Below are positions 5,563-64,000 of a stretch of 64,000 nt of DNA, piece by piece. The position numbers and the translations under genes were made by a program. The notes beneath the pieces are model-generated. The model was not told where the DNA came from and ran no database searches. It saw only the letters and a program-made list of their open reading frames with translations. Numbering within the stretch: position 1 is the first letter of the stretch; every line of letters starts with the position of its first letter. The DNA is from Iphione sp. A-MEVVRFRX5 (lineage: Eukaryota), in the NCBI GenBank assembly GCA_976226885.1, contig OZ320321.1:52390001-52454000 (forward strand), read 5' to 3'.

Positions 5563-5580
5563 ATTCCACTTCTGACACCA
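5563..5580 (-). promoter_or_regulatory. Primer-binding site complementary to the 3' end of tRNA-Leu(CAA)
   Basis: The minus strand reads TGGTGTCAGAAGTGGAAT one base after the LTR end, one mismatch from the recalled tRNA-Leu(CAA) 3' end ATCCCACTTCTGACACCA. Confidence 0.85.
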
Positions 5581-5581
5581 A

Positions 5582-43356: not shown

Positions 43357-43482
43357 TCAGTTATCTAGTCTGAATTTAATTGGGCCTGCGATATACCTGC
43401 CGGGAGTGGCGGGGTCAGGGGACAGATAGAAGTCAGCAAAGAGCTGCTGCACTCGTGGTAGATCAAGCGGTTTCTCCCCTCC
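43357..43482 (-). CDS. EF-hand gene last exon (GGEKPLDLPRVQQLFADFYLSPDPATPGRYIAGPIKFRLDN*)
   Basis: Acceptor ttcatcatttcag, phase 0, 126 nt including TGA. Confidence 0.9.
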   Translation of the reverse strand, partial: GGEKPLDLPRVQQLFADFYLSPDPATPGRYIAGPIKFRLDN

Positions 43483-46400
43483 CTGAAATGATGAAAAGGG
43501 CCTTTGTCTAGAACATGCTGTCCGTGCACCTACATCGATAGAGGATCAGATGTGTGCCGGTAGATTCTCGTGATGTGTATGTGGGTTCGCATTCTAGTTC
43601 AATTTAGAAATCCACTCCAAACTGTTTTAGTGTTAGCATTGGTTTAATGGAACTTTGTTGTCATAAAAACATCGCTTCTTCAACGCATAATATGCAGATG
43701 TACATCTATGACTTTGATGAAGTGTTAATTACTAAGACGAAGTGTTAATTACTAAGTGACTGAACAGTGAAAAAAGGACAACAGCTTCCGTTATAATCAC
43801 ACATTTATGAATATGGTTCACAATTGTGTACTTACCTCTGTCATGTGTGCAAAATATCGATCCAGATCTTCGTCTGATGCCAATCTGTAACCCCCGACAA
43901 AGTGCCAAAAATTGCGGTACTCATCTTTGTCCAGGACACCGTCACCTGTAGGTAAATGAACGTTCTCAGATGAACATTACCATCACGGTCTTCCCGGGGC
44001 TGTCGCCAAGGGAAGAAGCAGAAGTCGACCTGGTTGCAGAATTCATATATACAGGTACTTGTATGATGCCTTAATTGACCTCGTCGACAATCGAAATATG
44101 TAATGCACAATTCAAATTAACAGGAGGATCTGTAAAATCGATTAGGGGTCTACTATGAGAGGAAACTGAGATTGTCTCTACATCGTTATTTCATTAACCA
44201 TTTTTAGCGCTTTGTCTCGAGAAAATAGGAAAAACATACTATTTCTGGTTCACATATTTCAGTTTGTGGGCATAGGCTATGGAGCTTGATGAACCTTGAC
44301 TTACAGAATATACAATTCAGACCTTTTATGTCAAGCACTGGGAAGAGCGAATGTGGCACCAGGCGAACCCACTGTGGTAAAGATGCTGGACTTATATCCT
44401 TACTGGCCGCCACAATGTCCTCCCATAGGTGAACCCATTCTTCTCTGATGTGTAAAGCAATCATCCAACATCAAAAACTTGCCATTGAGATAAACGTGTG
44501 CGTCTGATAATTTTAAAAAGTCCGCCGGTACCAATTTGGTTGTCAAACATGTGTTTCATATACTACTTGGCTTACTACTACATGTATATACTATTACGTT
44601 GAAACTTTGTCCATGCAAAATTTAAAGTAGTAACTAAATAGGAATACAGGTATACATCTACTAACAAATTCTATTCATTCTGTAGTAAAACTTCACCGTG
44701 GGAAACTTTATTACAAAGGTACGTAATTCCTGTATGACGTTTCAATGTTTTTGAACTGACATATTTTAAAGTATCATTTTTTATTGTAAAGCTACATATC
44801 TATACTTTCTATTCTGTTCTAATTAATTTTGTGAAAATAGGCTGGTAAAAGTGGCCTCAGACTTCACAGCATTTGAACAGAAAATTAACTTCGATATCAA
44901 GAAGCTCTGTTCTCAGATGCTTCATCAACATAAGAATACCTGTATACAGACAAATTGTCACTTCATGTTGAATCTAGGGAGAGAGGACATTTCATCAATA
45001 TAAAGAATGTCTTGCGTATACCTTTTAGTTTACACAGAAGAGAATAATATAAAATTAGTTTCAAATGACGCACCTGGAAATATAGCCGTCCTTGTTTGTA
45101 TCGGCGCTTTCTAAAAGAATTGACCAGTAGTCGTCATACCCGGCTTTATAAACATCTTTCACTGCTTTGCCATGGAATTCTTCCGTATATTTTCTGAGCC
45201 GCTAAATCGAGAAAATGATTTGATTTTTCAAAGACACGTCACCACGTACCACACCACAAAGTAGCATTGTTCAGAAGGAGAGGAGCAATGTCAAATACAA
45301 GACATTTTGTAACTGTGATATACATGTACATGGTGTTTTAGACACCCAAGCTACACCTTTGTATTTTCGCGTCCAATTGATGGGGCTAAATAATCAAACC
45401 TTAAGCAATAGATGATCAGAATGCAGTGCACATGATATGTTGTATTGGAACGTACTGCTTCAGAAATTTGGGACTAGAGAGTCTCATTGTTAACACAAGG
45501 AGGCACCACTGGGTATGATTCATGTCTGCTGTAGAAGACGTTAGATATAGTGTGCGTCCTGATTCAATCTGGAGCTCATGCCAACTCCACCATCAATATC
45601 GTGAAAGAGAGTTTTTACCAGCCCACTTATTGTAGATATGATTTGAGATTTAGGAGATTTTTCAGAATTTTTCACTGAAAACCATATTCTAAAATTCTTT
45701 TTCAGAAGATTCGGCATGCTGAATATGTCCTACTTTGATTACATATGTAACGGTAGAGATACAGTCGGATATGATTGTATGTGTCTCATACATGAACAAA
45801 CGTTCTTTGACTGACTTGCATTGGTTGCAAAGTGTTGTGTTCCATGTGGATAAAACCATCGTGCCCATTACCGAAATAACTAATAGGCCTACACTGCACA
45901 CTTAATAAGCCTAGATGTGAGACAATATGACGGCAATCAACATATCTCGAAAGTTAGCGCAGAGTCACATCTTGCGCAGAGTCACAATCTTCTCCAAACC
46001 CGAAATATTTTAAAAGGGTAAGTAACGGTAACACGTACTTATCATTTATAAAGCAAGATATTTCTACCCCACTGAAAGAGATTAGATGGCTACACTACAA
46101 GTTTTAGCCTTAACTGGGCATAGGGCTCACATCTAACATTTATTCCATATATGCATTTACTTCACTACAATGTTAGCATAAACCATAAAAGTAGCTAGTT
46201 GACGGGTGCTCGAATAAAATGTGACGGACTGATCAGAAAGCTGCGTCCTTTATTAATATTAACACAGTAAGGTTACAAACCCTCTTAAAGGCATTAATGT
46301 CTGCGCTGTCAATGAAACCATCACCATCAGTATCTGAAATTAAAAATTAAACCATACAATGAGACACTGTAATGACTCAATCAATATATCTTTGTGATGG

Positions 46401-49400
46401 AGCCACGATATGGGGAGCAATTAGATGTGAAATGCTTAACATTAAAATCTATTCTATTTCGGATAGTTGCGTTGTGACTGTGCTTGGGACATTACCGAAA
46501 AACTGTTTAGTTTTTTTCTGATTTTTAGCATTGTCTGTGCGCAAATATAAATGCTTAATACAATGCAGCAGAATTCAAAATGATAGCGACGTTGTAAAAT
46601 CCTGCAGCTGTCATAGTTCAAATGTTTGACACCAGGCAGCACCACTGTCTTGACAGATGTAAACTCAGTACGAGCATAGATAAAATGGAATTGAGTTGAG
46701 AACAACTTGTCAGTTATCTGTGATAATAATTTATGCTTTGGCATATGAATAAGTATTGAAAGATAGTATTTGAGAGTTAGTACCATACCTTTCCACTATG
46801 GCTTATTGGGCATTTACACTTATAGGCTATGCACTGTGCTGCCCTCTACATTGTAGTCTGCAACTGAAGCTGGCGATCATGATAACGGCATCATATAGAG
46901 CCAAAACGATTTTACCCCTTGCAGATAGAAACGTATAGAACAGGTGACACATCGCTATCGTTACATCGTCCAGCATGGTACTTACTGTATGAAACCAATA
47001 CAAGCGTTACAGTGATTATCGACGGTACACTGGTACACCATTAGATTCGCCTGTTTAGCTGCATGTCTATGAGGGGAAATGAAAGCTGCTAAATCATTAG
47101 CTGGCATGTCAAATGAAAGAAACAGTATATTTAATCTCTCGTTGGCGGTGTAATGATGATAATTCCTTCTCTGTTTATAGCTATATAGCTATCGTAACAT
47201 CTCTTTGTCCCTTTGCTAAAATTGGTCCACTAGGCATTATGCCTGCGTTTCCTCCGGGTTTTTTAACACCGTAACGCGGTGCATATTGATGGTGTTTTGT
47301 GCTGATCAATGATAAGCTACACAAAGTGTCAGTCTATACTTTACAGTGTGTTCAATTTAATGATTTTGCTGCTAAATCATGTGAAGGTGATATATATATA
47401 CTATATGTATTCATTTGACGGAGATCAAGGAAGTGCATAAATCTTACCATATACGTGATCAAAGTCTTGTGTTATCTTTCGCAGCTGAAAATCATTGAGA
47501 CTGAATGCCAGTCGCTGTCCCGTTGTATGCACAGCTCGTTTTTCTCTCGTCTGGCCTACAAGATTAACAGAAACACATTGTTCCCTATTGAGATTGCAAC
47601 AGTTTGTAACATGAGCCTGGTTCGAAAAGTGATGTTCGTGAGTAAAGACTGTCCGCCCAAAAATATCTGGTTCACTATATAGGCCTACATGCAAAACTCG
47701 GCTGGGTGTAACTCTCTCCAAGTCCAGTGAGCGAATATCTGTTTATTCAGTGAAACGTGGCCCTTTATATAAAAAGCTGCTTCTAAACATAGGCATAGCC
47801 ATATGGAAAGATGCATAACAGACCTATCTCTGGGGAGAGTTGCATAAAACACTTAGCTATATTTAGTAGGCCTAATGCTTCTGGTTTAATACATGATTCT
47901 TCCAACTCAAACGGGAAGACATCCTGAATAGACATCTAATATGCAGTTCCATCTCCAAATTAATAGGAGGCAACCACAGCTATTCTGACTCACAAATTCC
48001 GAATGGAGACAGCCAGAATTAGTGTAAATGTCATACTAATTGATGTATGCACATCATGGTTTTGCCACATGTGAGGTGGTGGCCTCAGCCATCGTTTTAC
48101 TTTTGCCATGTTTTCTCCTATTTTACAAGCTAAAAGTATGGCAGACGGAAGTCTAAGATAAGATAAGAAATAATTTATTTCATCCTTTCTTCGCCTCGCT
48201 GAGGCGTTGTTGTAGGCTGGATGTTGGTAACATATATACAGTACATGACAGTATATACAATTCAAATTGATATGATATTTCAGTCTAATTGTTGCTTGTC
48301 TCTAATGAAAAGAAAAAATTTCTTAATCAAACATTAAATCTGGATAATTGTCTGAAAATGTCCATTGATTGTATTGACCTTATAAATGGGTCCAAACTGT
48401 TCCAGCTCTTTAGGCCTTGATAATGTATCGATCTTTTAATAAGTTCTGATTTTGGCTTGGTAACAGTTAGCACAGTAGCATCGTGTTGTCTAGTAGTAGC
48501 AGGTGCCTGTCTGGGCAGCAGATTATGAAGAGCCAAACAATGTATGATGCATAGGGTAAACATTTTTCTCCTGTTGCTTATTTCCATGCAGTTAAACAAT
48601 ATATGTAGTTCATGACTAGATAACATTCTTTTCGATCTCTTATATGCTGGTGTTGTAGTATAGATAATTGATAGAGCTTTGTCCTGTAATTTCTGTAACC
48701 TTTCAAGATGTCTCTTATTACAGCAAGATAACATAGCCGTTGAATAATCAACATGTGGCAGTACAAATCCTTTATACAGCCTTACCATATCTACAGTGCC
48801 CAAGTATGGCTTAAGTTTATACAGTAGTGACACTTTTTGCAATATTTTCTTCGTTACCTTTTCAATTTCATTAATGAACTTCATTGATTTTTCAAGAATT
48901 ATACCTAAGTAAGTGTATTTCTCCACATATTCAATTTCTTCATTACCAAGAAAGATACGTCCTACTGGATTAGTGTTATGACAATAGACTGGAAGAATTT
49001 TGGTTTTACCTATATTCATGACTAGCTTGTTCTCGTTGCACCAGTGGAGTAGTTTAACATAATCTAATCTAGAATATAGGATTTTTTCAAGAATGATTAG
49101 TAACATTAAGCTCTGTAATGTCCCCAGCACTTAGTACAAAGGTCTGATTGTATGTGAATTCAAAAGATTAGGCCTAAAAAGAAGTTCTGTGTTTCCAGTA
49201 ACAAGCCAAAAAAAGAGAGGGTCGGTCGGTAGGTACTATTTTCTTTATTTTTCTTTTCTGGAGCGTGTCTCTATCATTATTTTTCTTTTATATAACATGT
49301 CTCTCTCACCATTCATTCTGAAGTTATTCCAAAAACAAGAAAAAATAAATAAAAAGTTACAATTGGCCATAATATGGGGCCGGTTGGGTTACTGGAAACA

Positions 49401-52400
49401 CATATATTTTTCGTTTAGGCCTTAGTGGCAATTTCATTTAAATTTGTAAGTATGCATTTACAGAGAGAAAGATAGAGACACAGAAAGAAAGAAAAAAAGA
49501 AAGAAAGAAAGAAAGGGAGATGGAGAGGGACTGGGAAGATGGGAGGCTCTCCATCAACTTGACTAATAAGGAAACAATGGGTGGCAGGCGCCACCAATGT
49601 AAGATTACAAAAATACAAAGGAAAGGGGACATGTCTGTCGCTTTCTCTCCCTTTGCCTCCATGTTCTTTGGACTTGCCGGCCCCTAGAGGATCTGCTCTC
49701 AAAAGATAGGTGCGAAGTAGATGAATACAATGTATAGCATGCATCACATATATATGTACAGTTGAATGCAATTATGCTACCCTCTCTCAGATTTTTCCTG
49801 CTTTCGCCGCAGTACTGATTTTGGTCATCGTTGTCAAACCTTTTCTCTAATGGAAATAAATGAACAACCAGTAAACCTCCATTACTCTACTTGACTGCGT
49901 CTTCTGGTTTGGGTGAAAAAAACTCGCTTCTTCTAGATTTTTGTTCAATTGTTTGCCATTTTGCTGTGTTTTAGCCTAAAAAACTGTTTAATTTACTTCT
50001 GACCTTATGGATGTCTCCAAATCCCAGGGTTGTGGTCTTGTCATGTACTTTATATAACAGGTGGTGTACCATGCCACAATAAACCTTTCACCAGTTGGCA
50101 TATGCCAGACTCCAGAAGCTCAATATCCCTCGAAACCTGTTAGCCATTTCCAAATCTAACTAGACTATTGTTAGCACTGACCTCTCATACGATACGCTTA
50201 GACTTTCACTTAAAAATACAATCTATTCTCCTGTGTTATAACGTGCAAGTCAGGCTTCAGTTATAGCCAAAAAGGTCGTATGATACTGGCAGCACGTATC
50301 GCTTAGGAGTTCTCGCTTCATATAATATAGCTGTTGTCGACGAACGGGTCCAGTTGACATTTGAGCAGTATCAGTCACATTAAAAAGAAAGAAAATCTCT
50401 CGAAAGACCTCATTTGACATTTTACATAGGCCCGTACTTAAACTTCTTTTTCGCGCAAGTGGACATTTGACTAACTGCACGTATTTGTAAAAGGGTTTCT
50501 ATTGATATAATTTACTATTAGTTATGTTTGTATTAGCTGGGACGGTGTATGTAGCATAAAACATGAGAATCCTTCAAATCCATTCTATAGTGGGTTCCTG
50601 TCATGGGGATGGAACTCCACTCCTCTGTGGGGGTACAGTGAGCCCCACGATCCCCACTGTTTATGGACCTGTTATAAGCTATTCTTTTATTATTTGACCT
50701 GCCTCTGTATGAAAACTGCTTTTTATCGCAAAATCAAATTAATCACTTGTGTGGCCTGATATAATTATGCTGTCTGGGTTGCCAGGTTACCTTGAACCGG
50801 CAAATCACCCACCTAACAATCAAAGGGGGATTTATGATTTATACATGTATGTTGCTACTTTAAGGGGTTATTTTGTCATCTAAAAAGTCTCCCACAAGAG
50901 TGTATACAAATAAAAATTTAGTATGTACATATACATAGTATGTATTACCTTTAGTTTGAATTTTTTATTGTAGAGTTTATTTATACTTCTGTTGTGTTAT
51001 AGGTAATTTTGTCTCAAATAGTTTGGCCATCACATTTATTCATAGTTATTCGTGATTTTTTTCATTTTCATTTCATTGTATCTTTTACCAGGAATATATT
51101 CACCTATCATCAAGACAGGGCTCTTTTATATCCTCCTGGGTAGCATACTACCATCTCTTATTGAGGATTAGAGACCAAAATAACTGAGGTTGTCCCCTAC
51201 TCTTATTTTGAATAGGTTGCTGGGGTCTTTATGTGCATGGGGGACAAAATCCTATACACCAACAGCCATTTTATGAGTTGTGGACCACTTTGGGTTGGGG
51301 CTACAGTAAATCTGTCTGGTGGTGATCAAGAGTCCCAAGCCCAGGATTGAAGCTGTGACCTCTCAATCAGTGGACCAGTGCTCTACCACAGACCTAATTG
51401 TTTCATTTAGTTTGACATACACGTCTGAATTTATATATCCTTGATTACTTAAGATCTAGAGTTATTTAATATTATCATCTTTAGTGCGAAAATGTTTTTT
51501 TCATATTCTATTCACAATACATGCCGGTGCATCACCGCAGGCCCGCGGCATGGAGCAACTTCAATCACTGCAAGGAAACCCCAGATACGGCCAGCATGGG
51601 AACAGTATCTCTCTCCCAGTGAGCAGGCTATTTCTTGTAAAACTCCAAGATATTCCGTTTCCGAGATGACCTACAACTTGATCTTTAGTTGACCGCCCTG
51701 GACAAGTATGACAGGCTCTTCTGTGCCACGTTGGGATTTCTTTAAAAAAGTATCAATGAAGAGAATTATACATAGTTCAAATTCAATCTATTCTTACGTT
51801 TAATCCAAATAATCAATGATCATATATCTGTAGAAATGCGCAAATATCGTAAAGCGTGGGGCGGAACCAGACGTGGAGCTTTTTTTTAAAGCACTTCTTA
51901 AAATTCGGTCCTAGTCACAGAGGAACCCAAGCTATTATACCCTCGTACAGTGCACTCTCTCGATTCCAGACACCCTCCGTTCTGCGTCAAATCGTCTGCA
52001 TTGTAGACGCGTCCGCATTGGAGATCGGACTGGGGGGGTCATGCTTGGAAATATTATCCCCTTCTCCCTCTCTCTCTACTGAATTTGACCAGTAAAAGCC
52101 CTAAAAGTCCTGAATTTGACCAGTAAAAGTCCTAAAAGTACTGAATTTGACCAGCAAAAGTCCTGAATTTGACCAGTAAAATTCCTGAAAGTACTGAATT
52201 TGACCAGTAAAAGTCCTAAAAGTCCTGAATTTGACCAATTAAAGTCCTAAAAGTACTGAATTTGACCGGTAAAAGTAAAAAAGTAATGACTACTGGAGCC
52301 TTCTTGGAGCCTACCTGGAGCCCCAAATTCACGCGACAACACTTCGTACACAGGGGTTATTCATCTCTACCTTTGAAAATGACTTCTGGAGCCTCCCTGG

Positions 52401-55400
52401 AGCCCCAAATTTGCACGACAAGACTTCGTACACAGGGGTTATTCATCTCTACCTTTGAAAATGACTTCTGGAGCCTCCCTGAAGCCCCAAATTCGCGCGA
52501 CAACACCTCATCCACAGGGGTTATTCATCTCTACCTTTGAAAAATGACTTCTGAAGCCGTCCGCAGGGAGGCGTCCCCTAAATTTTGCCGTCCGCATTGG
52601 AGACATAGGCTTATAATGGTTAACTATAGGAAATCATTTCGTTCTGCGTCAAATTGTCCGCATTTGAGGCGTGTCCGCTTCCGAGACGCGTCCGCAGGGA
52701 GTGTACTGTATATACCTCGGTCCTTTTATGTGGACGTGACTGTTTGAAATAAGTACATGTATAATATTTATGGTGGGGGGGCAGCGAAATATCTGTGTTT
52801 CCGGTAATGTGGTGAAAAATTGTAGGGTCGGTAGGTCGGTGGGGTTTTTTATTTTTATTTTTTTCAATATAAATAAATCCATAAAATAACAAATATATAC
52901 GGTGACATGAGTTCTACTGCTTAAATTTTAATGTAAATTTTACCAAATGAAATGAGACCTTGACTCATGTTGCATCCAACACTTTTGCTAGGAGATATAT
53001 CTAACTTGCAGCAGAAAATGACTCTTAGCTTCTATCTCCCTTTCTCTGCCTTTCTCTCGCTGCCTATCACCTTTCATTTCTCTAAGTTGCGACATGCAAC
53101 AGTTACTTATAAGGAGCAATGGTCCAACTGGTAGCTTGGTTATTTACTACAAGCCAACTTGAGATAGTTTTATGATATATATTAGCATGAACTATTGTAC
53201 ATCATGTATCTATAAATGTACAGTAAGGCAAAACAGCGAGGGCACTGAAAAGTGAGTTGTTGGAATAGCGAAGGTTTTTTTTTTTTTAACTTTTATTTAC
53301 CCTGGCCACAACTGAGGCCAGTCATAATTCTACACGTGATTAATCCATCTTAAAGCTAAGATATTTACAGTTAATATATACACTATATACAATATATACA
53401 GCTATGTACAGTATATACAGAAAATGATATTTTCAACAGTTTACAAAACAAGAAAAAATTAATAATGAGTAACATGCGCCAGACAAACAAAGAGAATTTT
53501 TTAACATAGTGAGGCAGGTTGTCAATGAAAACAAGTTTGTCTTACGATTCATGAAACTTTCCAATTTCCTCTTGACAAGCGATTAAACAGTTCTTGTTTG
53601 ACTTTTCTCTTAAAACATGGTTTTTTTCTCTACTTTCAGGTTGTCATCAAGATCATTCCATAATTTTGTGGCAAAATAGGTTGGATTCACTTTAAATGTT
53701 GACCTTTTTGGGAAGGGGAGTGGTAGTGATGTTCTCCTAAATCTTGATTTGGATTTTAATTCTAGGTAGGGGGTTATTAAATGTTTATGGAAAGTCGAAA
53801 GGCAATAGTAATGACTACGTAGTATTAGTGGGAGTATGTTCAAGGTATTGCTTAGGGAGTGATAGTCATTGTAGTAGTCACCTGTGGCTAGTCTCATTGC
53901 TTTTACCTGCTGGGCCTCCAGCCTTTGGAATTCAGAAGAGTTATACATATTGATCACACCAATAGCATAATCCATGATTGGAATGAAGAATGATTTTAGG
54001 ACTTGAATTGCTATGTAACGACTTATCCATTTTGATTGCCGTATCATGTGTATTATGGAATAAGATTTTTGTAGTTCTTTATTCATTTCCAGCTTCATGT
54101 TCAGATGGTTGTCTAAGATTATGCCTAGGTATTTGTAACTTGAGACATGGTTAATTTGTTTTGCACCTATTTTTATACTGATTTTATGCCGACTATATTT
54201 GTGCCGATTGCTAGAAAAAAGCATGCTTTCAGTTTTATCTAGGTTAATTTTTATTCCGTTGGTTGTACACCATTCATTCAGAGAATTGACATCTCGTTCA
54301 AGTACGTCCATAACCGTTGAGGGTTCCGTGTTTGCATATAGTAGGATGGTATCATCCGCGTCCATGACGCAATGTGAATTTCTTAATGTTTTAACACTAT
54401 CATTAATAAACAGGGAAAATAATAAAGGACCAATTGTACTGCCTTGTGGAACGCCTGTTTTAAGTGGCAGTGTCTGTGAGACGTGATCTGCTATTTTGGT
54501 TTGTATTGATCTATTAGACAAATAGTTATTGAACCATTCAATGGCATTAGAAAAACCCAAATATTTTAGTTTCTTTAACAATACAGAATGCTGAATGCTG
54601 CCGAAGGCCTTTTGGTAATCTACAAATATTGCCCCTACAATTTTCCCTTCATTCATATGAAGATGAATGTAATGAAGGACATCATTAAGGGCACCTACTG
54701 TTGACCTCGACTTCCTGAATCCATACTGGTTTTGACATAGAATGTTATGACGGTCGATGTAATTGATACATTGATCATAAACTAGTCTTTCCAGGATCTT
54801 ACCAAATATTGAGAGAATACTAATGGGTCTATAGGAATTTGGGCTATAGCGATCACCCTTCCCCTTATAGAAGGGGGTGATGCGGGCCCTTTTCCATCTT
54901 GCTGGGATAGATCCAGATCTCAGTATCAAATTTAGCAAGGTAGTAAATTCAGAAATTACAACAGTTAGGCTGGTTTTTAAGATTTAGACAGATTCTATGT
55001 CAGTTCCGGTAGGCTTTGAGCTTTTTTGCTTCTGTACCACCTTTAACACATCGGCATTAGTAATTGGACTGAGACAGAATTCTTCAGATGGGGCCTTCAC
55101 ATAGTGTAATATTAATTTATGATTGAGATTATATGGACAGGTTCCTACTGTTGCAAAGTGTTTGTTAAATTTTTTGGCAGAGGCTTCAGTTGATAATAAT
55201 GACTCACCTTCTTTTAGTAATGGCGTTGCCCCTGCTTTCCATTGGCCAAGACATTCGTTCAGAGCCTTCCAGTATTTTTTAGGGTTACCTCGGTTTTCAG
55301 ATACCTTGCTTGTACAATATTTGGATCTATCCAACTTCATTAATTCTGAACACCTACCCTTTAGAATTTTGACTTCCTTAAATAGGGCATCTGATTTGAG

Positions 55401-58400
55401 AATCAATGCTTTTTTGAACAGTGTATTTTTCTCTTTAATCAAGTTTCGTGTAGCTTTGGATAACCACAGTTGGTTTTTATGTAATGAACGACTAGTCTTT
55501 CTTCTGCTTATATTGTTTACCGCATGTTGTAGATACAACTCAAATCTTAATGTAATATAGTCAATGTCGTTAGAGGATGCAAGTAAAGTCTGAAGAGTGG
55601 GTATATAGTCCGATATTAGTGAGTTTGTTAGTCTGCTATTATGATCATCGTTCCATGGTCGATAAGTGAAAGGTGTAGTGTTATTTACTGGTTTCTGGAA
55701 TTTTAAGCTTATTGTGGTAGCATAGTGATCACTGATGTAGGTTTGAATATAGTTGTACAGCTATTGATTGTATCATTTGTCAATATTAAGTCTATGCAGG
55801 ATGATCTTTGAGGCGTTCATCTAGTCGGTTCTTCTACAGTCTGGGATAAGTTGTGATTATTACAAAAGTGTTTTAATTTGAGTAAATTTGGATTGTTATG
55901 ATCTAGGAAGTCTATGTTGAAATCTCCAGTCAGAATGATTGTTTCTCCTCTCATGACTAGTTTTTTGACAGTGTTTTCAAGTATGTCGAAAAATGTATTA
56001 ATATTGCCACTTGGAGGTCGATAGAGTGCTATTATCAATAGTTCGTTACCTAAAGAGGGGCATATTTGATGACATGAAATTTCAATATGTTTACAGCTAA
56101 CATTGAGGGGCATAAATCGCATACTATCCAAAGGAAGGTGTTCTTTATAGTACACTACCAAGCCCCCTCCAACGCCAAATTCTCGGTCCATTCTAGACAT
56201 AAGGTACCCATTAATGTGGAGTACACTATCAGGAATGTCCGATGTCAACCATGATTCTGACTCATGAGCTCTCCCTTTCTGTGTATATATTCAGCCCATT
56301 AGGTTTAATTTCCATGTGAATATGGTTTCACGGCATGGCGCCATGTTTTCCACGTATTCTCTGGAGTCTATCCTTATCTACTGAGGTATTGCCATGTGGG
56401 GATGCTCCATGCTCAATCTCCCGTGGTGCTGTGTTTTTCAAATTGGGACGTCCCAAATCTCATGGTCACCGCACCATGTTGCCATTGTGGTTTTTGTTGT
56501 GAACATGGGTAAAACAGGAGTGAAACAGGGAAACAAAGTTACCCCCATCCTTTCTCATCATAACTTCTGTATTGATTTATTGGGATGGGGAGTTAGCTAA
56601 GTTGATAAGAGTGCTGATTGGCACTGGTTCAGTGATTGAGAGGTCGCAGGTTTTGATTTGCAAAATGTTTATTCTGGAACATATGCACAATTATGGTTCA
56701 TATTGCCCAGAGATATATAGGCTCAATCCTGTGCCTGGAACTCTTGATCATGATCAGATTTACTGTAGCCCCTACCTTGAGTGGTCCATAACTTGTAACA
56801 AAGGTCATAGGTGTATAGGATTATGTTGCCTATGTACAAAAATACCTAAGAAACCTGTTCTTAGGGCAACTCCGGGTATTCTGGTCTCCTAGTTCTCAAT
56901 AATAGATAGTAGTATGCTATCCCAAGAGAATAAAAAATGAATGTCTAGTTCATAGTCAAAGATACAATTTAAGTGAAAAAAGAAATGAAACATTTATTGG
57001 TGTTTTTTTTCTAATCAACCTCGGTTTACCGATACAAAAGACTAAGATTTCGATGAATGTGTTAATATGAGAACATATTCACTCAACAATCGAACTGATA
57101 CTTTACTATTCATTGATATATATTAGGCTTACAAGTATTTATAGATGAATATTTTTGTGGAAAAGGAATACAAGAAAAATGTGGCCAAAAACATTAGCAG
57201 TAACATGTCACACAGTCGTATACTTACCACTTCATTTATTTAATTACATGGTTCTTCGTATGTAGGATACTCTTTATGGGCACAGGTTACTTAACTCAAA
57301 AGTCTTTTGACATGATGAAGTATTTCACCAAAAATAGACGGTATTCCGCACAGAACTAATTATTTTCAAATTAAATGAAGACTACAAACCAATGTTAACC
57401 TAATAATCTCTATTGATCAGTTTCATCACAAGTCCTCCTCAACGTCTTTCTCAGGGGATATGAGGAGCGAAGAAATCCTCGATCTGTACGAGCAGGTTAG
57501 CACAGCAACAACTCTGCTCACTTCTCAGTAGTTACTGTAGTTGGGAGCGCTCCAAGATTTACGAGATAGTTTCCATGGCCATAATCCAGTCAAAGCCCAG
57601 AAGGAGTGGTTCACAGACTGATTGCAGTGCGTCAAATATGCAACGCTTAAATGCACATATATAATGTTATATTCCACATCTACCTGACCTTTCATCATTA
57701 TCCATGATATATGTTCTGGCCGTGTTTGTTAGGAATAGTCCCCACTTGTTACATGCATATTGTACCGAGTCCCTCGCCTAGAGTTCTATTTTCAACTCGC
57801 GTACTGGACTAGGGCCTCTCTTCAAGTTTTGAGTTTCATTCGAATGACCAACAAACACTTCACCGGTGGCGATTTTAACCTCCAAATTTCAGAGTCTTTG
57901 AACAAAACATGAAAGAAAAAGTCTCCTAAAGTTTGATGGAGAAATTGTAACTAAATGCTAGAAAAAAATGTACCGTCATCTCAAAAGTAAAATACAGCAT
58001 CAGTAAACAACTACAGACACGTCTATACATCTGACCCACATTTATAATAGCATGTGTTCGGAACTAAGAGTAATGGCTGGCTAACCAGACGGAAGAGGTC
58101 TGTGTTCTTATAACAAGTTCCGTGTGCTCGCGTTAAATGCTCTTCCCTATTGATTCCTTGAATATTCTGTTAACATGTAATCATTAAATTATAGTTTGCA
58201 GAGTCCCGTTTTATGAAATAAGAGCAAATTAAAAACTTCAAAGAGGTGGTGTATCCACTCTCAAGGAGCGACATTCAAATAAGGTAAGGATAGCTTGTAT
58301 CGACAATCTAAAATGGAAGCAACATATTTGTGTGTATCATAACACCTATACGGATTTCTAGTGGCCTCCCCTCCCGGCTTCCCCTACATAAATGTAACAA

Positions 58401-58947
58401 GTTCGGCCATTTATACAAACACCGGCCTATAACAGATAATGAATATCACATGGATCAAATACCCGCACAGAGATCGTGCCAATTCAAACATATATTTCTT
58501 CTGGATATGCTGATTAGACTAAAACTAATCATAGCGGTGTGATGGGTCATGTAAACTATGACAATTTTTTTAAAGAACATTTTTAAGCCCAGATATCGTG
58601 TTACAAATATATAACATGGATACTCCCCGACTGCTGTTCAGGAATACCCTCCCAGTTCGCTCTAGACTGCTGCGTCGTTGTCACAGTTACAGGAGGCCTT
58701 ATTCCAAACGTTTCAAAAGACAAAGCTTACCTGATCGAAAAGCAAATGATCTTAATCCCGGTAACAGCATGCGGCGAATAGTCGACAGCATACTCGAGCT
58801 GCGGACAGGCTACAAAGTGCCGGGGGACGGGAGTTCAGATAAGCAGCGGGCGTAGTAGTAGTCTCAGCAGAACACCTTTACCTCTGCTGGCCTCATTTGA
58901 GCTCCAAGGCTCTGACCTGAGCAAGTGCTACTTACGCTACTGGCCAT
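43357..58947 (-). CDS. Calexcitin/SCP-like EF-hand Ca2+-binding protein with a predicted mitochondrial presequence (~235-245 aa)
   Basis: Exons 58947-58936, 58809-58731, 47555-47448, 46333-46281, 45201-45074, 44444-44323, 43945-43836 and 43482-43357 are all GT-AG and in phase. EF loops are DTDGDGFIDSAD, DTNKDGYISREE and DIKGDGVLDKDE, with a degenerate fourth. SLNDFQLRKITQDF, LPQW and the DPATPGRYIAG C-terminus are calexcitin-like. The core is secure; the 5' exon link is a model. Confidence 0.8.
43836..43945 (-). CDS. EF-hand gene exon (DGVLDKDEYRNFW...FAHMTE)
   Basis: Acceptor catttacctacag, donor gtaagt, phase 1-0. Confidence 0.92.
44323..44444 (-). CDS. EF-hand gene exon (EEWVHLWEDIV...LPQW...LFPVLDIK)
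   Basis: Acceptor ttacacatcag, donor gtctga, phase 2-1. Completes EF2 and starts EF3. Confidence 0.88.
45074..45201 (-). CDS. EF-hand gene exon (RLRKYTEEF...ADTNKDGYIS)
   Basis: Acceptor ttctcgatttag, donor gtgcgt, phase 0-2. Confidence 0.9.
46281..46333 (-). CDS. EF-hand gene exon (DTDGDGFIDSADINAFKR)
   Basis: Acceptor tttttaatttcag, donor gtttgt, 53 nt, phase 1-0. Canonical EF1 loop. Confidence 0.9.
47448..47555 (-). CDS. EF-hand gene exon (GQTREKRAVHTTGQRLAFSLNDFQLRKITQDFDHVY)
   Basis: Acceptor tgttaatcttgtag, donor gtaaga, phase 1-1. There is no in-frame ATG nearby, so an upstream phase-1 exon is required. Confidence 0.85.
48158..49135 (-). mobile_element. 5'-truncated CR1/L2-type LINE with (TCTTA)n tail
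   Basis: ORF 48327-49130 has the RT thumb/C-terminus (YTYLGII, LYKGFVLPHVDY, WNSL). The tail AATAAATTATTTCTTATCTTATCTTA is the same as in the insertion at 4726-5015. Confidence 0.9.
49169..49424. mobile_element. Kolobok-like MITE (GGCC termini, TTA flanks); related ends at ~38035-38110 and ~52780-52870
   Basis: AGGCCTAAA...TGTTTCCAGTAAC is mirrored at both ends, with a GGGTCGGTCGGT subterminal motif. The superfamily label is inference. Confidence 0.6.
51120..51400 (-). mobile_element. tRNA-head SINE copy
   Basis: Its reverse complement aligns with 56600-56940 (GATTTACTGTAGCCCC, GGTGTATAGGATT, GTAGTATGCTA). Confidence 0.7.
51948..52708. mobile_element. Tc1/mariner(pogo)-like MITE, TA TSD, with internal tandem arrays
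   Basis: TA|CAGTGCACTCTCT...AGGGAGTGTACTG|TA ends. About seven copies of CTGAATTTGACCAGTAAAAG (52079-52280) and three ~82-bp units (52290-52550). Confidence 0.75.
53275..56268 (-). mobile_element. CR1/L2-clade LINE (APE + RT), 5'-truncated, inactivated
   Basis: APE motifs SESWL, YRPP and TGDFN (55817-56248). RT ORF 53610-54938 has YRPISIL, GVPQGS and YKYLG, but YADD reads DADD. There are frameshifts, and the 3' UTR ends AATAAA-poly(A) at 53297-53275. Confidence 0.93.
56590..56940 (+). mobile_element. tRNA-head SINE copy (inverted relative to 51120-51400)
   Basis: Shared blocks with the 51.1-51.4 kb copy, plus a ~70-bp internal insertion. Confidence 0.65.
58731..58809 (-). CDS. Candidate presequence exon of the EF-hand gene (PVRSSSMLSTIRRMLLPGLRSFAFRS-G)
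   Basis: Pyrimidine-rich acceptor cccgtcccccggcactttgtag, ATG at 58791 and strong phase-1 donor cag|gtaagc that matches the phase-1 acceptor at 47555. Confidence 0.7.
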
Positions 58948-59132
58948 CTATATCTGAGCGTTAACGGCGTGAGGAACAGACAAAAATCTGGGTACGAAAA
59001 TGTTCGCGCGGGTAGCGAGTGTTGATGACGGCTCGCCTCGCTGTCCATCTGTGACGTGCTGACGGTTGAGCACGGAGAATAGAGCATGTAGCTAGCTATA
59101 TATATCTCCGATATAACATTCGTGATGAGTCA
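58936..59132 (-). promoter_or_regulatory. Probable promoter and exon 1 of the EF-hand gene
   Basis: AP-1 site TGAGTCA at 59126-59132, TATATATA at 59097-59104 and donor gtaagt at 58935. ATG GCC AGT AGC (58947-58936) is in frame with the next exon. Confidence 0.62.
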
Positions 59133-59559
59133 CCCTTTTTATTCGTTTCTCTAATTAAAAAAAGTCCATTACACTTTCATAAATTTCCATTAACGGTCCA
59201 CTTAGTACCGGCTATATGTCTGAATAAAAAATTAATTGCATTGATCAGGATTGCTCAATACTAAATTTGAGCCAATACACATCCAAGCCAACTCGACAGT
59301 AATAACGGTGTAAAGAACACAGATGTGAACTAATTAATAGATGCATCCCCCACTTTTACTTGAAGAGATTAATGCAAGGGCGGCCAGGATATGGTGTTGA
59401 GGGTGGTTTATTCCACGCTTGTGCAGTAAAAGGCCAATGATCGGCCAATTATACTAACACTACTAACCAGTGTAGACACAGGAAATTGAATTCTCCTAAG
59501 TAAGTTTCAATATGGTGACTATAATCTACCAATAAGTAGAAGTAGAATCAGCACTGACC

Positions 59560-59900
59560 ATGGTTTTATAACTTGCCACCTATGTAAGACCAATATATGA
59601 ACAGGCAGATAAATTTCACTACAAACTTGTCTGTCCAGCAAATGAAGGAACATAGAGAAAAGTACATTGAGAAATATTTCAGAACTAGACCAAATGTCAT
59701 CAAAATGTCTCAGTTATTTAATTCGAAGGATATAAAAGTACTAACCCAAACAGCCAGATTCATAAAGAAAGTCATGTCTTACTTTCTGAAAACCACTGAC
59801 CAAAAATCAAAACTTCACTCAAACTAGGAGACATTGCTACAAGTAAGAGATCAAAATAGTGCATGTAAACTGTGATTAACACATGGTGCTGACCAAACCA
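59560..59900 (+). mobile_element. LINE ORF2 3' remnant
   Basis: REKYIEKYFRTRPNVIKMSQLFNS...ARFI resembles a common LINE ORF2 C-terminus. Confidence 0.55.
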
Positions 59901-59954
59901 TGGTGCTAGTTGTATAAATACCCTCTATGTGTTACTAGTTCTGTAGTTTTATAG

Positions 59955-60141
59955 TGTTGCGGGCTCCGCTCACCGGAGCCCGCTGTTGGCGGAAATTGTG
60001 AAATTGGGGCTCCGCCCGGAGTAGCATTCTGTATATAAGTCGGGCCGGGCGGAGCTTCGTTGTCATTTGTGTCCTACCCTTAAAGTAATAAACTTCATCA
60101 ACTGTTATCTGGAAGTCATGTCTCTTCGATCGGGGCGAACA
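59955..60141 (+). repeat. 5' LTR (~187 bp)
   Basis: TGTTG...GAACA termini, TATATAA at 60032 and AATAAA at 60087. An alternative start at TGTTGG 59984 is possible. Confidence 0.75.
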
Positions 60142-61380
60142 ATTGGTGGCAGCGGTGGGATCCCTGCCCTAGGGGCTGAGGCAGAGGAAGAGGCGGAAGC
60201 GGTCAAGCTCCGGGCGGAGTCGGCGGAGCCTGCGGAGCCCGCCGAGTCAGCGGAGGTCGCCGAGGAGCTGCCGGAGCCCGCCTGGCTCCGCCCGGAACCC
60301 GCCACTGACTGGGACGCACAGTCTATGGAGGGGGATCAGCCTCTGGGTAGCGGGGATGCCCATACCAGAGATGAGGTGGGGCATGGGGCTGACGAGGAAG
60401 AGAGAGAACACGGGGCCCCCACCTCATCCGCCCCACACAGATCTAACGAGGACACTGATGACCACCCTCCTCCGGAGGAAGACGAAGGAGAGGGGGAGCC
60501 GACCGACCAGGCAGCCGAGCCGCTCTGGACTAGCTTTGTCCAGGAGCTGAGTTCCGCCCTCCGGCCGGAAGGAGGAAATAAGAAGAGTCTGGTGAAACCT
60601 GACACTTACGATGGGAGTACGCCCTTGCGGGACTTTCTACAACATTTTGAGCTGGTGGCCCTGGCAAACCGTTGGGGGGCCGGAGAGAAAGCCATCCAGT
60701 TGGGCATCACTCTGAGGAAGTCGGCACGGGCGGTCCTGCGGAGTTCGGGGATCGATGTGGAGAAGCCCCGAGCTTACCAGGAACTGGTGGCCGCCCTCAC
60801 GGAGAGGTTCCAATCCAAGCATCAGACAGACGCATACATCCAGCAACTGAAGGGGCGTCGGCAGGGGAAGGCCGAGGCCCTAGCGGATCTTGCAAACGAA
60901 ATTGAGCAATTGGTACAGCTGGCCTACCCTGAGGCGAAAGGGGCCTGGAAGGACCGGATGTGCCGCGAATACTATGTCGGGGCCCTCAGCAACGAGAAGG
61001 TTCGGAAGTGGGTGACCCAGGCCCGAGTGGCAACCTTTCGTGAGGCGTTGTCAGCATCGCAAGTAGCGGAGTCTTATTATCAGCATAAGTCCGAAAGGGT
61101 GGGACCCAAGCGCGTGCATAAGCTGGAAGTGGCCACCGAAGAGGCTTCGACCAACAAGTCCACCCCCAAGACCGAGGCTACAGCGGCAGGCTTCGAACGG
61201 CTGGAGCTCCTGCTTCAACAGTTATTGGCAAGCCAACAAGGGGCGGAGAAAGAGAATCGCCGGCCGAACAACAAGAAATGCTTCAACTGCGGGGAGCTCG
61301 GGCATTTCAAGCGCAACTGTCCCCAGCCCTTGAAGGAGCAACCGTCGGGAAACGGGGCAGCGGCCGCCCCTCGCCAGTAG
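60118..61380 (+). CDS. gag: Gypsy Gag (acidic N-terminus, capsid, CCHC knuckle)
   Basis: Open from ATG 60118 (MSLRSGRT). Contains KPDTYDGSTPLRDFLQHF...ANRW and CFNCGELGHFKRNC. Confidence 0.93.
   Translation: MSLRSGRTIGGSGGIPALGAEAEEEAEAVKLRAESAEPAEPAESAEVAEELPEPAWLRPEPATDWDAQSMEGDQPLGSGDAHTRDEVGHGADEEEREHGAPTSSAPHRSNEDTDDHPPPEEDEGEGEPTDQAAEPLWTSFVQELSSALRPEGGNKKSLVKPDTYDGSTPLRDFLQHFELVALANRWGAGEKAIQLGITLRKSARAVLRSSGIDVEKPRAYQELVAALTERFQSKHQTDAYIQQLKGRRQGKAEALADLANEIEQLVQLAYPEAKGAWKDRMCREYYVGALSNEKVRKWVTQARVATFREALSASQVAESYYQHKSERVGPKRVHKLEVATEEASTNKSTPKTEATAAGFERLELLLQQLLASQQGAEKENRRPNNKKCFNCGELGHFKRNCPQPLKEQPSGNGAAAAPRQ
60144..60161 (+). promoter_or_regulatory. Primer-binding site complementary to tRNA-Leu(AAG/TAG)
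   Basis: TGGTGGCAGCGGTGGGAT is the reverse complement of the recalled 3' end ATCCCACCGCTGCCACCA. Confidence 0.9.
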
Positions 61381-61391
61381 AGAGGGCGGCC
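61347..61391 (+). promoter_or_regulatory. -1 ribosomal frameshift signal
   Basis: G GGA AAC in the gag phase at 61347-61353, an 8-nt spacer, then stem GGCCGCCCCTC/GAGGGCGGCC. The -1 frame is the pol ORF. Confidence 0.85.
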
Positions 61392-63597
61392 AGCCTCCAA
61401 CCCCATTTGGAAGAACATCTCAGGATGATTCGGCTGTCTTGTGAGCGGGAGGTCACTCTGGAAGGGGAGAGCGGCCCCGCAACAAACATCACGCTACCTA
61501 GTACAATCGACGGTCGGATAGTCCCCTGGTTAGTGGATACCGGGGCGTCACTGACCCTGCTGTCGGAGGAAGTCGCCGACACCCTGTCGCTCGGGGAGTT
61601 GGAGCCGACAGTGGGGGGGATTTTGTGTGCAGACGGGAAACCCCTACGAGTGAAGGGAAGGACGAGGTTGAAGGCGAGTTTTCAAGGGATCGAGTTGGAA
61701 GTCAAAGCCTGGGTTGCCCAAATCGACTGCCCCGCCATCTTGGGGCTGGATACGCTTCACAAATGGAAAGCACAGGTGGACACGGAGGGGGCCGCGCTGC
61801 GGGTGCGGGTCCCCGAGGACAACGGCGCGAGTGGATGCCGGGCAGAGTTGGCGGAAGATTGCCACCTGGACGGGAGGAGCGCGGTGCAGGCCCCCTTGCG
61901 ATGGACGGGGCTAGAGACCGACACTGGACCTGTGGTGGTGGAAGCCTCCCCCGAGTGGGAGGGTCGCTCGGGGATGCTACTGGCACGGACGGTGTGCCAG
62001 GCGGGAAGTCAGTCCGGAGTGGCAGAAATAACCAACCCTGGCCCCGTGGGGCGTCGACTGAGAAAAGGAACCGTTGTCGGCAGGGTCCAGCGGGTGGACG
62101 GGCCAGTGCGGGTCGTCCCGGAGAGCGAAGGGGTGGCGGACGAAGACGTGGAGCTAGGACCAGCGCTCAGGACCCTGCTGGAGCGCCTGCCACCCATGAC
62201 TACCGATGAGCGGCAGGGGGTCGAACAGATGCTGCGGCGTAACGCGCGCTGTTTCCAAGAGGACGGGCAACCGCTTGGGCACACTGACACGGTCCAGCAC
62301 CGGATCGACGTACAAGGACACGCCCCCATCCGGCAGAGGGTACGCCGCCTCCCCCCCGCGAAGAAAGCACTAGTACAGCAGGAGGTGAATCGGATGCTGC
62401 AGCAAGGAGTGCTAGAGGCCTCTACCAGCCCGTGGGCGTCGCCCGTGGTTCTGGTCCGGAAGAAGGACCAATCTTGGCGATTTTGCATTGACTACCGCGC
62501 CCTTAACCGAGTAACGAAGAAGGATGCCTACCCCCTTCCGCGGATCGACGAGACACTGGACGCGTTGGAGGGGGCACGTTTCTTCTCGGCGATTGACCTG
62601 GCCAGTGGCTATTGGCAGGTAGGAGTGAGACCGGAGGACCGAGAGAAGACGGCTGTCTGTACTCCAGGTGGGCTTTACCAGTTCCGGGTCATGCCCTTCG
62701 GACTGTGCAACGCGCCCTCCACCTTCGAGCGGTTGATGGAGGCCGTGCTCCGGGGCCTGGTTGGGCAGTCCTGCCTGGTCTACCTGGACGATGTGATCGT
62801 GATAGGGAGGACGGTAGAAGAGATGACCCGCAGGCTCGATGACGTCTTCAGCCGCCTGGGGGAGGCCGGACTTAAAGTAAAACCGCAGAAGTGTCAGCTG
62901 TTCCAGAGGGAGGTGGCCTATCTGGGGCACCGCGTGTCGGAGGAGGGGGTCCAGCCCGACCCTGAGAAGATCCGGGCCATTCAGGAGTGGCCTCCCCCGC
63001 GCTGTATCACGGAGTTGAGGAGCTTCATCGGACTGTGCTCCTACTACAGGAGCTTCGTGGAGGGGTTCGCCATGCTGGCGGCCCCCCTGCACGGACTCTT
63101 GGAGAAAGGACAGGAGTATCGCTGGGACGCCGAATGTCAGCAGGCGTTTGAACAGTTGAAGGAACGGTTGGTGACCGCCCCCGTCTTGGCGTACCCGCGG
63201 CCAGAGGGACAGCTAGTGCTGGACACCGATGCATCGGCGGCTGGGATCGGAGCCGTACTGTCGCAGGAGCAGCAAGGACGGGAACGGGTGTTGGCCTACG
63301 CCAGTCGAAGTCTTGCGCGCCCGGAGAAGAACTACTGCGTCACCCGGAAAGAACTGTTGGCAGTGGTCTTCGGTCTGCGTAAGTTTCGCTCTTATGTTGG
63401 AGGGCGAAAGGTGGTAATCCGGACGGACCATAGTTCCTTACGTTGGCTATGCAGCTTCAAGGAACCCGAGGGACAGTTGGCCCGCTGGCTCGAAGAGGTC
63501 CACTGTTATGACTTGGAGGTGATACACCGCCCGGGAAGGAAACACGGGAACGCTGATGGCCTCTCGCGAGTCAAGTGCCCCCAGTGCGGACGGGACC
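61347..63597 (+). CDS. pol: Gypsy Pol: protease, RT, RNase H
   Basis: LVDTGAS, IDLASGYWQV, MPFGLCNAP, YLDD, DTDASAAGIGAVL and TDHSSL, uninterrupted. Confidence 0.96.
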
Positions 63598-64000
63598 GGA
63601 AGAGGATCTGCCGACCCTGGGGCAAGTTGCTACGGTGTCAGTGGCCCCGGCCGCATTGGACTCCTTAGCCCAAGCCCAGAAGGCTGAGCCCGAAGTGGCG
63701 GCCCTCATTCGAGCCTGGGAGGCGGAGGAGCCTCTCCCTGGACTGACTGGTAGTGATTCCCCGGAGGGGAGGTGGCTGAAGAGTGAGTCGCGGCGGTTGA
63801 GGATGAAGGACGATCTGCTTTGTCGGCGTTGGGAGGCGGAGGACGGAACGCTGTACTATCAGGCTTACGTGCCCCAGCCATTGAGATACGACATCTGGCG
63901 TGAAGTCCACGCAGGAGCGTTGGGAGGGCATCTCGGCGCTGAGAAGACAGAAGGTGCCCTTCGCCGGAAATATTGTTGGCCAGGACTCCGACGTGATGTG
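63596..64000 (+). CDS. pol: Gypsy integrase N-terminal zinc-binding region (out of frame with RT-RH by 1 nt)
   Basis: PEEDLPTLG...YQAYVPQPLRYDIWREVHAGALGGHLGAEKT...KYCWPGLRRDV is open to the window end. Confidence 0.9.

Follow-up and report, generated by a model that had tools for sequence, protein, structure and literature searches.

Calexcitin of Loligo pealei (PDB 2CCM, 4NDB-4NDD) is described as a cytosolic neuronal Ca2+ sensor with K+ channels and ryanodine receptors as its targets (PMC13042319). It has no leader, and its fold consists of an LSDFQ N-terminal helix, three canonical EF-hand loops, a degenerate fourth hand, and the C-terminal motif F-Y-L-S-x-D-P-x-x-P-G. The SCPs of amphioxus and crustaceans (PDB 2SAS, 7WBO, 2SCP) are leaderless soluble muscle Ca2+/Mg2+ buffers, compact in build, with four EF-hands and an acidic mature part. 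In insects, juvenile hormone diol kinase (JHDK; PDB 6KTH, 7PJD) is an enzyme-annotated branch of the same family and fold, also without a leader. Mitochondrial Ca2+ handling is described in terms of channels, exchangers, membrane-associated EF-hand regulators (MICU, EFHD1, Miro, SLC25 carriers), and phosphate buffering; in model organisms, phosphate is regarded as the main buffer of matrix Ca2+. MICU1-3, EFHD1, Miro, the Ca2+-binding SLC25 carriers, and LETM1 have EF-hand architectures unrelated to that of the calexcitin/SCP family and are mostly membrane-bound or intermembrane-space regulators.

Here, we describe a locus in a 64,000-nucleotide stretch of Iphione sp. A-MEVVRFRX5 DNA (GenBank assembly GCA_976226885.1, contig OZ320321.1, positions 52,390,001 to 52,454,000), referred to below as the window, to which all coordinates apply. 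The locus, in an animal genome of invertebrate type, is a nuclear gene that is intact and encodes a calexcitin/SCP-family four-EF-hand protein. Eight joined minus-strand exons, with AG/GT at each internal boundary, give an open frame of 738 nt (245 aa, TGA stop; Table 1). The features described in an earlier sequence-only reading are present in the sequence where that reading had placed them. Its statement that the six core exons are without a usable start codon and need a phase-1 upstream exon was confirmed by a reading-frame check: the frame of exon 3 is open upstream as far as 47742 with zero ATG, and the first Met of the core lies far downstream, so an upstream phase-1 coding exon is required.

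Table 1. Features of the calexcitin/SCP-family locus and its upstream region, in window coordinates
Feature	Position	Strand	Remarks
Promoter-like motifs	59097..59132	(-)	TGACTCA at 59132-59126; TATATATA at 59104-59097; inside small CpG-rich patch; promoter role putative
Upstream out-of-frame ATG	59046..59048	(-)	Strong context, A at -3, G at +4
Candidate exon 1	58936..58947	(-)	ATG + 3 codons, donor GTAAGT; least certain part of the model
Candidate exon 2	58731..58809	(-)	Phase-1 donor CAG/GTAAGC; basic, amphipathic N-terminal part of leader; internal in-frame ATG (58791), A at -3
Intron	47556..58730	(-)	11.2 kb
Exon 3	47448..47555	(-)	Phase-1 acceptor; C-terminal part of leader and first helix of fold (LNDFQLRKITQDFDHVY)
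Arg-10-type motif codons, RAVHTTGQRL	47509..47538	(-)	End 3 residues before LNDF helix
Exon 4	46281..46333	(-)	EF-hand loop 1 (DTDGDGFIDSAD); first codon of loop split with exon 3
Exon 5	45074..45201	(-)	EF-hand loop 2 (DTNKDGYISREE) begins, finishing in exon 6
Exon 6	44323..44444	(-)	Family-specific Trp-rich helix region
Exon 7	43836..43945	(-)	Most of EF-hand loop 3 (DIKGDGVLDKDE), begun in exon 6
Exon 8	43357..43482	(-)	Degenerate fourth EF-hand, C-terminal family motif (FYLSPDPATPGRYIAGP), stop codon

Assignment to the calexcitin/SCP family, as originally suggested from the letters of the window, is supported both by profile matches (E ~1e-26) and by calexcitin being the closest fold. Single exons alone gave weak, generic EF-hand or chance matches against Pfam and PDB, and an Atlas search with exon 5 brought nothing informative. 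A profile composed of the six core exons as separate rows and five orthologs matched amphioxus SCP 2sas best among solved structures (3.4e-26), followed by calexcitin (4ndc, 5.5e-26; 2ccm, 1.6e-25), JHDK (6kth, 1.8e-19), and SCP 7wbo (1.1e-18), each match spanning about 180-195 residues. None of MICU, EFHD1, Miro, the SLC25 carriers, or LETM1 was among the 52 PDB profile matches.

The fold was tested on an ortholog that is 49% identical to the window protein (P0010). Its AlphaFold model (pLDDT 87, pTM 0.80) is a compact globular fold of four EF-hands in two pairs, as is characteristic of the calexcitin/SCP family, and in Foldseek it matched calexcitin 4ndb/2ccm best (TM 0.87 by target), with 2sas and JHDK next. 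Calexcitin thus shares fold and domain length with the ortholog model, and the LSDFQ helix, the three canonical loops plus degenerate fourth hand, and the C-terminal motif are further features in common; identity is about 24%; 2SAS is about 30% identical to the ortholog, and the similarity of JHDK is lower. In the window protein, EF1-EF3 have canonical 12-residue Ca2+ loops (sequences in Table 1), and the fourth hand has no canonical loop. Ca2+ binding is predicted; because the last residue of EF1 is Asp and position 3 of EF3 is Lys, affinities may be unusual. The C-terminal motif F-[YF]-L-S-x-D-P-x-x-P-G-x-x-x-x-G is present, and exon 8 is colinear with the C-termini of the JHDK and SCP chains and of all relatives. 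No PTS1-like sequence was seen when the C-terminus was inspected by eye. The predicted mature part is acidic (about 196 aa, pI 4.9), as in the SCPs.

With exon 6 as query, orthologs were recovered from JGI 3300060324, 3300008038, and Ga0126339 and from SRR14325532. Five expressed orthologs (P0008-P0011 and P0002) are 47-57% identical to the window protein over the full length; we consider them transcripts because their contigs (1-2 kb) are intronless and carry 5' UTR sequence. A second profile search (A2) gave four related loci, of which the genomic ortholog L004 was the useful one. Just upstream of the motif, L004 has a phase-1 acceptor nearly equivalent to that of exon 3, without an in-frame ATG, so the two genes have the split-leader layout in common. 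In L001, L003, and L008, the start codon is preceded by in-frame stops. The nearest annotated relative found, a scallop ‘SCP I, III and IV-like’ protein (P0012), is 33% identical and has a C-terminal extension but no N-terminal leader. By sequence comparison, the gene is a member of a small and as yet unannotated clade of orthologs with an N-terminal leader of 30-50 residues, unlike the rest of the family. Since the clade is missing among the annotated proteins reached, it has probably gone unnoticed.

The leaderless start typical of the family is found neither in the window model, with its 49 basic-leader residues before LNDF, nor in the orthologs, with 32-43 aa; by comparison, the profile match to calexcitin starts at residue 3 of the 2CCM chain. 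Checking the orthologs for presequence character, as the sequence-only reading had proposed, revealed an N-terminal extension in all five expressed orthologs and in one genomic ortholog, and its absence from 21 other family members compared. Those with a recognisable first helix begin 1-15 residues ahead of it, mostly 1-6. The composition first reported for the window leader (8 Arg, 1 Lys, and a single acidic residue) holds: among the first 46 residues the acidic one is a Glu, and Asp is absent; the leader also contains 13 S/T and has a net charge of +8. Sequence is not conserved among the ortholog extensions, yet all are basic with few acidic residues (net charge +2 to +8, 0-3 acidic residues). 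The first 35 aa of other family members have a net charge of 0 to -5 in 20 of 21 cases, the remaining one (P0027) having +7.

Each leader contains two to five phi-x-x-phi-phi motifs (TOM20-type), and the maximum 11-residue hydrophobic moment is 0.62-0.83; some leaderless relatives have similar values. A hydrophobic core was sought in all leaders and found in none (maximum 9-residue Kyte-Doolittle mean 0.76-1.5; window, 0.98). The presequence call is one from hand-computed, uncalibrated features. In the model of P0010, leader residues 1-36 are of low confidence and lie outside the fold.

The processing motif of Oct1/MIP substrates has Arg at -10, and an octapeptide of the form (F/L/I)-x-x-(S/T/G)-x4 comes next. 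In a published account of Oct1 substrates, Arg is likewise at -10 and the octapeptide is removed (PMC8847149). A pattern of this kind (MPP, then MIP), ending at the calexcitin fold, had been noted in the window; it is indeed present and, as a pattern match, is kept in six of seven orthologous sequences. In these six, the last position of R-x-[FLIVM]-x-x-[STG]-x4 lies 2-6 residues ahead of L[SN]DF, against an expectation of 0.35 sequences from shuffled leaders; as the sequences are related, this count reflects conservation rather than independent occurrences. The conserved variants are R-x-(F/I/V)-x-x-(S/T/G)-x4, with Val at position 1 of the window octapeptide. L003 is without the Arg motif, and the leader of P0008 has acidic residues near its end. 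Because the motif lies within exon 3, it is independent of the distant exons 1 and 2.

These features lead us to lean slightly towards reading the leader as a cleavable mitochondrial matrix-targeting presequence on a soluble Ca2+ buffer or sensor. The mitochondrial reading originally advanced has gained from the ortholog leaders and the conserved motif, but import, cleavage sites, and sub-mitochondrial compartment are still what we infer from sequence features. If the reading is right, the precursor would bind the TOM/TIM23 import machinery through its basic amphipathic N-terminal segment and be cut twice: first by MPP, two residues past the conserved Arg, and next by Oct1/MIP, which would take off the octapeptide (V/I/F)-x-x-(S/T/G)-x4. 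This would leave a mature N-terminus 2-3 residues before the first helix, as in leaderless family members, and the processed protein would serve inside mitochondria as a soluble buffer or sensor for Ca2+, possibly for Ca2+/Mg2+. The broader proposal, that an invertebrate lineage keeps a dedicated soluble SCP/calexcitin-type matrix protein with two-step (MPP, then Oct1/MIP) presequence cleavage, is one to which we give a little less than an even chance.

Assignment of exons 1 and 2 as the first exons, 11 kb upstream of exon 3, is plausible. We scanned the minus strand from 47556 to 64000 for ATG-initiated exons with a phase-1 donor and obtained 24 candidates. It is conceivable, though rather unlikely in our estimation, that the gene and its extension are real but that the first coding exon lies elsewhere, either within the 11-kb intron as a different small exon with an ATG (e.g. 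53077-53071) or beyond the window, in which case the N-terminal half of the leader would differ from the version first proposed. The existence of so many candidates favours this alternative, as do the weak exonic context of the exon 1 donor (AGC/GTAAGT, 5/7) and the situation at the proposed transcription start. The TATA/AP-1 promoter that had been suggested upstream consists of motifs that are present in the sequence, but the out-of-frame ATG at 59048, ahead of the start codon, counts against a TATA-driven start: if transcription begins upstream, a uORF of 56 codons from this ATG spans both candidate start codons.

The alternatives fare less well when compared with the orthologs. The exon ATG AAA G/gt at 53077-53071 (donor 5/7) was rejected, the resulting leader being much shorter than any ortholog's; with short alternatives, the motif Arg is preceded by only about 8 residues, compared with 16-25 in orthologs, and the remaining long ones are acidic or inside LINE ORFs. 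Among the 24 candidates, the best donor outside transposon ORFs belongs to exon 2, which is also the only one to give a leader of ortholog-like length and charge, with 26 residues before the motif Arg when read from its internal Met. It adjoins the CpG-rich patch at 58750-59249 (CpG observed/expected 0.88-1.41, against a background of 0.56). As the motif is encoded by exon 3, the presequence reading would largely survive a different first exon. The 11.2-kb intron is filled with same-strand LINE fragments and tandem repeats (52046-52550); its LINE ORFs comprise a reverse transcriptase (53610-54938), an endonuclease (55817-56248), and further frames at 48327-49130 and 54984-55538. The best matches of the reverse transcriptase reach only 35% identity, and the named ones are from Pinctada imbricata and a clam-symbiont MAG entry.

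We consider it unlikely, though worth weighing, that the extension is not an import signal and instead forms an uncleaved disordered regulatory or membrane-/partner-binding segment of a cytosolic Ca2+ sensor (e.g. a basic amphipathic helix or a nucleolar-type signal). Calexcitin and SCPs are described as cytosolic (PMC13042319), and sequence features alone do not prove import. The AlphaFold model of P0010 has a long predicted helix at residues 12-34, and a Cys-x-x-Cys in the leaders of P0010 and P0011 hints at another role there; the window leader, however, lacks these Cys residues. Against such a segment, what is conserved in the leaders is character and not sequence, which is typical of targeting peptides rather than of binding segments. 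Moreover, the sole conserved element fits a processing motif, cleavage at which would yield the N-terminus of the leaderless relatives.

A silent or decaying gene copy, with upstream exons in a chance arrangement, is very improbable: a large transposon-filled intron does separate the parts of the gene, but the frame is intact over eight exons, all splice sites are canonical, the three Ca2+ loops are intact, and identity to expressed orthologs extends over the full length, and a pseudogene was therefore rejected. An ER signal peptide on a secreted or luminal protein, for which PMC5935387 offers a precedent in secreted salivary family members of insects, was rejected as the least credible alternative because the leaders have no hydrophobic core and are charged along their whole length.

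Returning to the mitochondrial presequence, the basic leader and conserved cleavage-type motif suggest an undescribed soluble calcium-binding protein inside mitochondria. The sequence-only reading had held that the family has not been placed in mitochondria, and this agrees with our literature search for calexcitin or SCPs with mitochondrial targeting, in which no mitochondrial member and no linking paper were found. If the matrix reading is right, the protein would share compartment and EF-hand Ca2+ sensing with the recognised mitochondrial EF-hand proteins, but as a small, soluble, high-capacity SCP-type protein, it would be a different kind of component. A matrix Ca2+ buffer or sensor of this SCP type is not known from model organisms. 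The clade is set apart from known family members by its N-terminal leader. Should the presequence reading be true, the matrix would gain a small, acidic, three-site SCP-type protein buffer or sensor, and a second compartment would be added for the calexcitin/SCP family, whose members have until now been treated as cytosolic.

The eight-exon, minus-strand gene model proposed by the sequence-only reading is present in the DNA: when its exons are joined by script, all acceptors are AG, all donors are GT, and the result is a 738-nt frame of 245 aa that ends in TGA. As that reading had argued, a phase-1 coding exon must precede the six core exons (exons 3–8), because the exon 3 frame is open up to 47742 and holds no ATG. 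Searches with single exons return generic EF-hand signals only. A profile (A1), in which the window's six core exons were entered as separate rows beside the orthologs, matches at nearly full length the amphioxus SCP 2sas (3.4e-26), calexcitin (4ndc and 2ccm, ~1e-25), juvenile hormone diol kinase (JHDK, ~1e-19), and the crab SCP 7wbo (1e-18). For an AlphaFold model of the ortholog P0010 (pLDDT 87), the nearest fold is calexcitin (TM 0.87 by target), followed by 2sas and JHDK. The earlier assignment to the calexcitin/SCP family is thus established by sequence matches and, via the ortholog, by fold. In the window protein, EF-hand loops 1–3 are canonical, EF1 having Asp as its last residue and EF3 a Lys at position 3, and the fourth hand is degenerate. 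The C-terminal motif of the family is there too, and the mature part has an acidic pI of 4.85.

Exons of the calexcitin/SCP-type gene model (exons 1 and 2 as candidates) and mobile or repeated elements around them (window positions)
Feature	Position	Strand	Basis or remarks
Exon 1	58947-58936	-	minus-strand reading and exon join
Exon 2	58809-58731	-	minus-strand reading and exon join
Exon 3	47555-47448	-	minus-strand reading and exon join
Exon 4	46333-46281	-	minus-strand reading and exon join
Exon 5	45201-45074	-	minus-strand reading and exon join
Exon 6	44444-44323	-	minus-strand reading and exon join
Exon 7	43945-43836	-	minus-strand reading and exon join
Exon 8	43482-43357	-	minus-strand reading and exon join
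RVT_1 LINE ORF, 442 aa	53610-54938	-	within intron, same strand as host gene
Exo_endo_phos_2 endonuclease ORF, 143 aa	55817-56248	-	within intron, LINE piece
Further LINE fragment ORF	48327-49130	-	within intron
Two adjacent tandem arrays	52046-52550		within intron; a 31-nt unit (ACTGAATTTGACCAGTAAAAG-like) repeated ~7 times, followed by an 82-nt unit present three times
Ty3/gypsy-type element	60067-63668	+	gag ORF with zinc knuckle; protease-RT-RNase H ORF
Second Ty3/gypsy-type region	3562-5597	-	gag-like ORFs 4226-4744 and 5004-5597

The intron upstream of exon 3 owes its 11.2 kb to LINE pieces and tandem repeats; the best database relatives of the intronic LINE reverse transcriptase are only ~35% identical, and one of these hits bears the name of a pearl oyster. 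A Ty3/gypsy element with a GC content of 0.61, compared with a background of 0.39, begins on the opposite strand, ~1 kb upstream of exon 1. Because gag-like ORFs at both window ends have a KPxxYDGS...ANRW motif in common, one Ty3/gypsy family probably flanks the window in opposite orientation. Elsewhere, two adjoining minus-strand ORFs (207 and 199 aa) occupy 34237-35463, the upstream one matching DUF3504 (1.1e-14), a domain of Crypton-derived/ZMYM-type genes, and the second being Pro/Ser/Thr-rich. A dense repeat cluster at 16177-17607 (180-nt inverted arms, 89% complementary, then ~126-nt tandem units) overlaps a minus-strand ORF of 285 aa that is rich in Pro.

Compared with a representative library, exon 6 found seven proteins, among them P0002, a partial ortholog of 195 aa. 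Word searches using P0002 and profile A1 then recovered P0008–P0011 and, past these, nothing but remote SCP-like and bacterial EF-hand proteins. The five orthologs are 47–57% identical to the window model, and their contigs (1.0–1.9 kb) are intronless and have 5′ UTRs; they therefore represent transcripts, sequenced either in metatranscriptomes or in an RNA run. Three stored gene calls start late, two of these at a codon other than ATG: an in-frame ATG lies 12 codons upstream of the called start of P0008 (locus L002), and ATGs lie 31 codons upstream for P0009 (L007) and 51 for P0002 (L003), so that the database proteins hide the leader partly or wholly. The N-termini encoded by L001 (P0010), L003, and L008 (P0011) are complete, since an in-frame stop precedes the ATG.

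With 5′ ends reread from the upstream ATGs, the L(S/N)DF helix of all five orthologs is preceded by a basic leader of 32–43 residues; a conserved presequence character in orthologs had been suggested as a check. Another 21 family members start 1–15 residues (mostly 1–6) before this helix, where it is recognisable. The composition first reported for the window's leader is correct (the first 46 residues contain 8 Arg and 1 Lys, with a single Glu and no Asp); ortholog leaders have net charges of +2 to +8 and 0–3 acidic residues, and the first 35 residues of the other members have net charges of 0 to -5 in 20/21 cases (P0027, +7). The leader sequences cannot be aligned with each other, and each contains several phi-x-x-phi-phi motifs. 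In the P0010 model the leader is of low confidence (block means 52–69), the well-predicted fold beginning at ~residue 39. The P0010 and P0011 leaders, from one metatranscriptome, have a common C-x-x-C-x4-C pattern (KCAKCMLQAC and TCRKCLAAGC), which the window's leader lacks.

One conserved leader motif, R-x-(F/I/V)-x-x-(S/T/G)-x4, ends 2–6 residues before the helix in six of seven orthologous sequences: the window has RAVHTTGQRL, and its relatives have RSIHTSGALR, RDFHVGGALY, RQISTGRCLC, RNFHATRCVC, and RGFATTARVC. Shuffles of each leader give an expectation of 0.35; because the sequences are related, the observed count reflects conservation, not independent occurrences. The window's motif codons (47538-47509) lie within exon 3, and the motif is therefore independent of the distant exons 1 and 2. 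Judged by sequence, the layout of this candidate site matches two-step processing by MPP and then Oct1/MIP, whose substrates have an Arg at -10 and lose an octapeptide to Oct1/MIP (PMC8847149). In this pathway MPP cuts two residues past the Arg. The predicted mature N-terminus falls 2–3 residues ahead of the first helix, at the place where relatives without a leader begin. Alternatively, the same Arg may mark an R-3 or R-2 single-step cleavage site.

The split-leader layout is common to the window gene and the genomic ortholog L004 (JAAUXT010142827.1), in which a phase-1 acceptor lies just upstream of the motif without an in-frame ATG; relative to the motif, the acceptors of the two genes are offset by three codons. 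Scanning 47556-64000 on the minus strand for ATG-initiated exons with a phase-1 donor gave 24 candidates; apart from exon 2, those with strong donors all lie inside LINE ORFs. The donor of exon 2 scores 6 of 7, and outside LINE ORFs this exon has the highest charge and hydrophobic moment. Use of exon 2 is probable, and that of exon 1 doubtful. The exon 1 Met stands 36 residues before the motif Arg, and an internal Met of exon 2 (58791, A at -3) 26. Short first exons, including the ATG AAA G (53077-53071) named earlier as a competitor, would leave only ~8 residues before the motif Arg, compared with 16–25 in orthologs. That some other first exon is in use, the remainder of the reading being unchanged, is possible if unlikely. 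The proposed promoter motifs are indeed there (TGACTCA at 59132, TATATATA at 59104), and a CpG-rich patch covers 58750-59249 (observed/expected 0.88–1.41 vs a background of 0.56). An ATG in strong context at 59046-59048 (minus strand) would open a 56-codon out-of-frame uORF spanning both candidate start codons, which counts against the start proposed from the TATA motif; transcription may instead begin downstream of this ATG, or the gene may be under uORF control.

The ortholog evidence strengthens the presequence hypothesis at the level of sequence, and on balance we favour a nuclear-encoded SCP/calexcitin-type protein that would be imported into mitochondria via a cleavable presequence. MPP would cut two residues after the Arg, Oct1/MIP would remove the octapeptide, and the mature protein would be a soluble Ca2+ buffer or sensor inside mitochondria. 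We think it rather unlikely that the basic extension stays uncleaved and has another role in a cytosolic protein. A silent gene copy is highly improbable given the intact frame and splice sites, and secretion is scarcely credible, as no hydrophobic core was found in the leaders (no 9-residue Kyte-Doolittle mean above 1.5).

Published work presents calexcitin as a cytosolic sensor (PMC13042319), and our literature search found no report of a mitochondrial calexcitin or SCP. The nearest annotated relative reached, a scallop SCP-like protein (33% identity), differs in having no leader. The leader-bearing clade was found in unannotated sources only, by a word-based search able to miss relatives, and searches relying on gene calls such as those stored for three of the orthologs would miss this feature.
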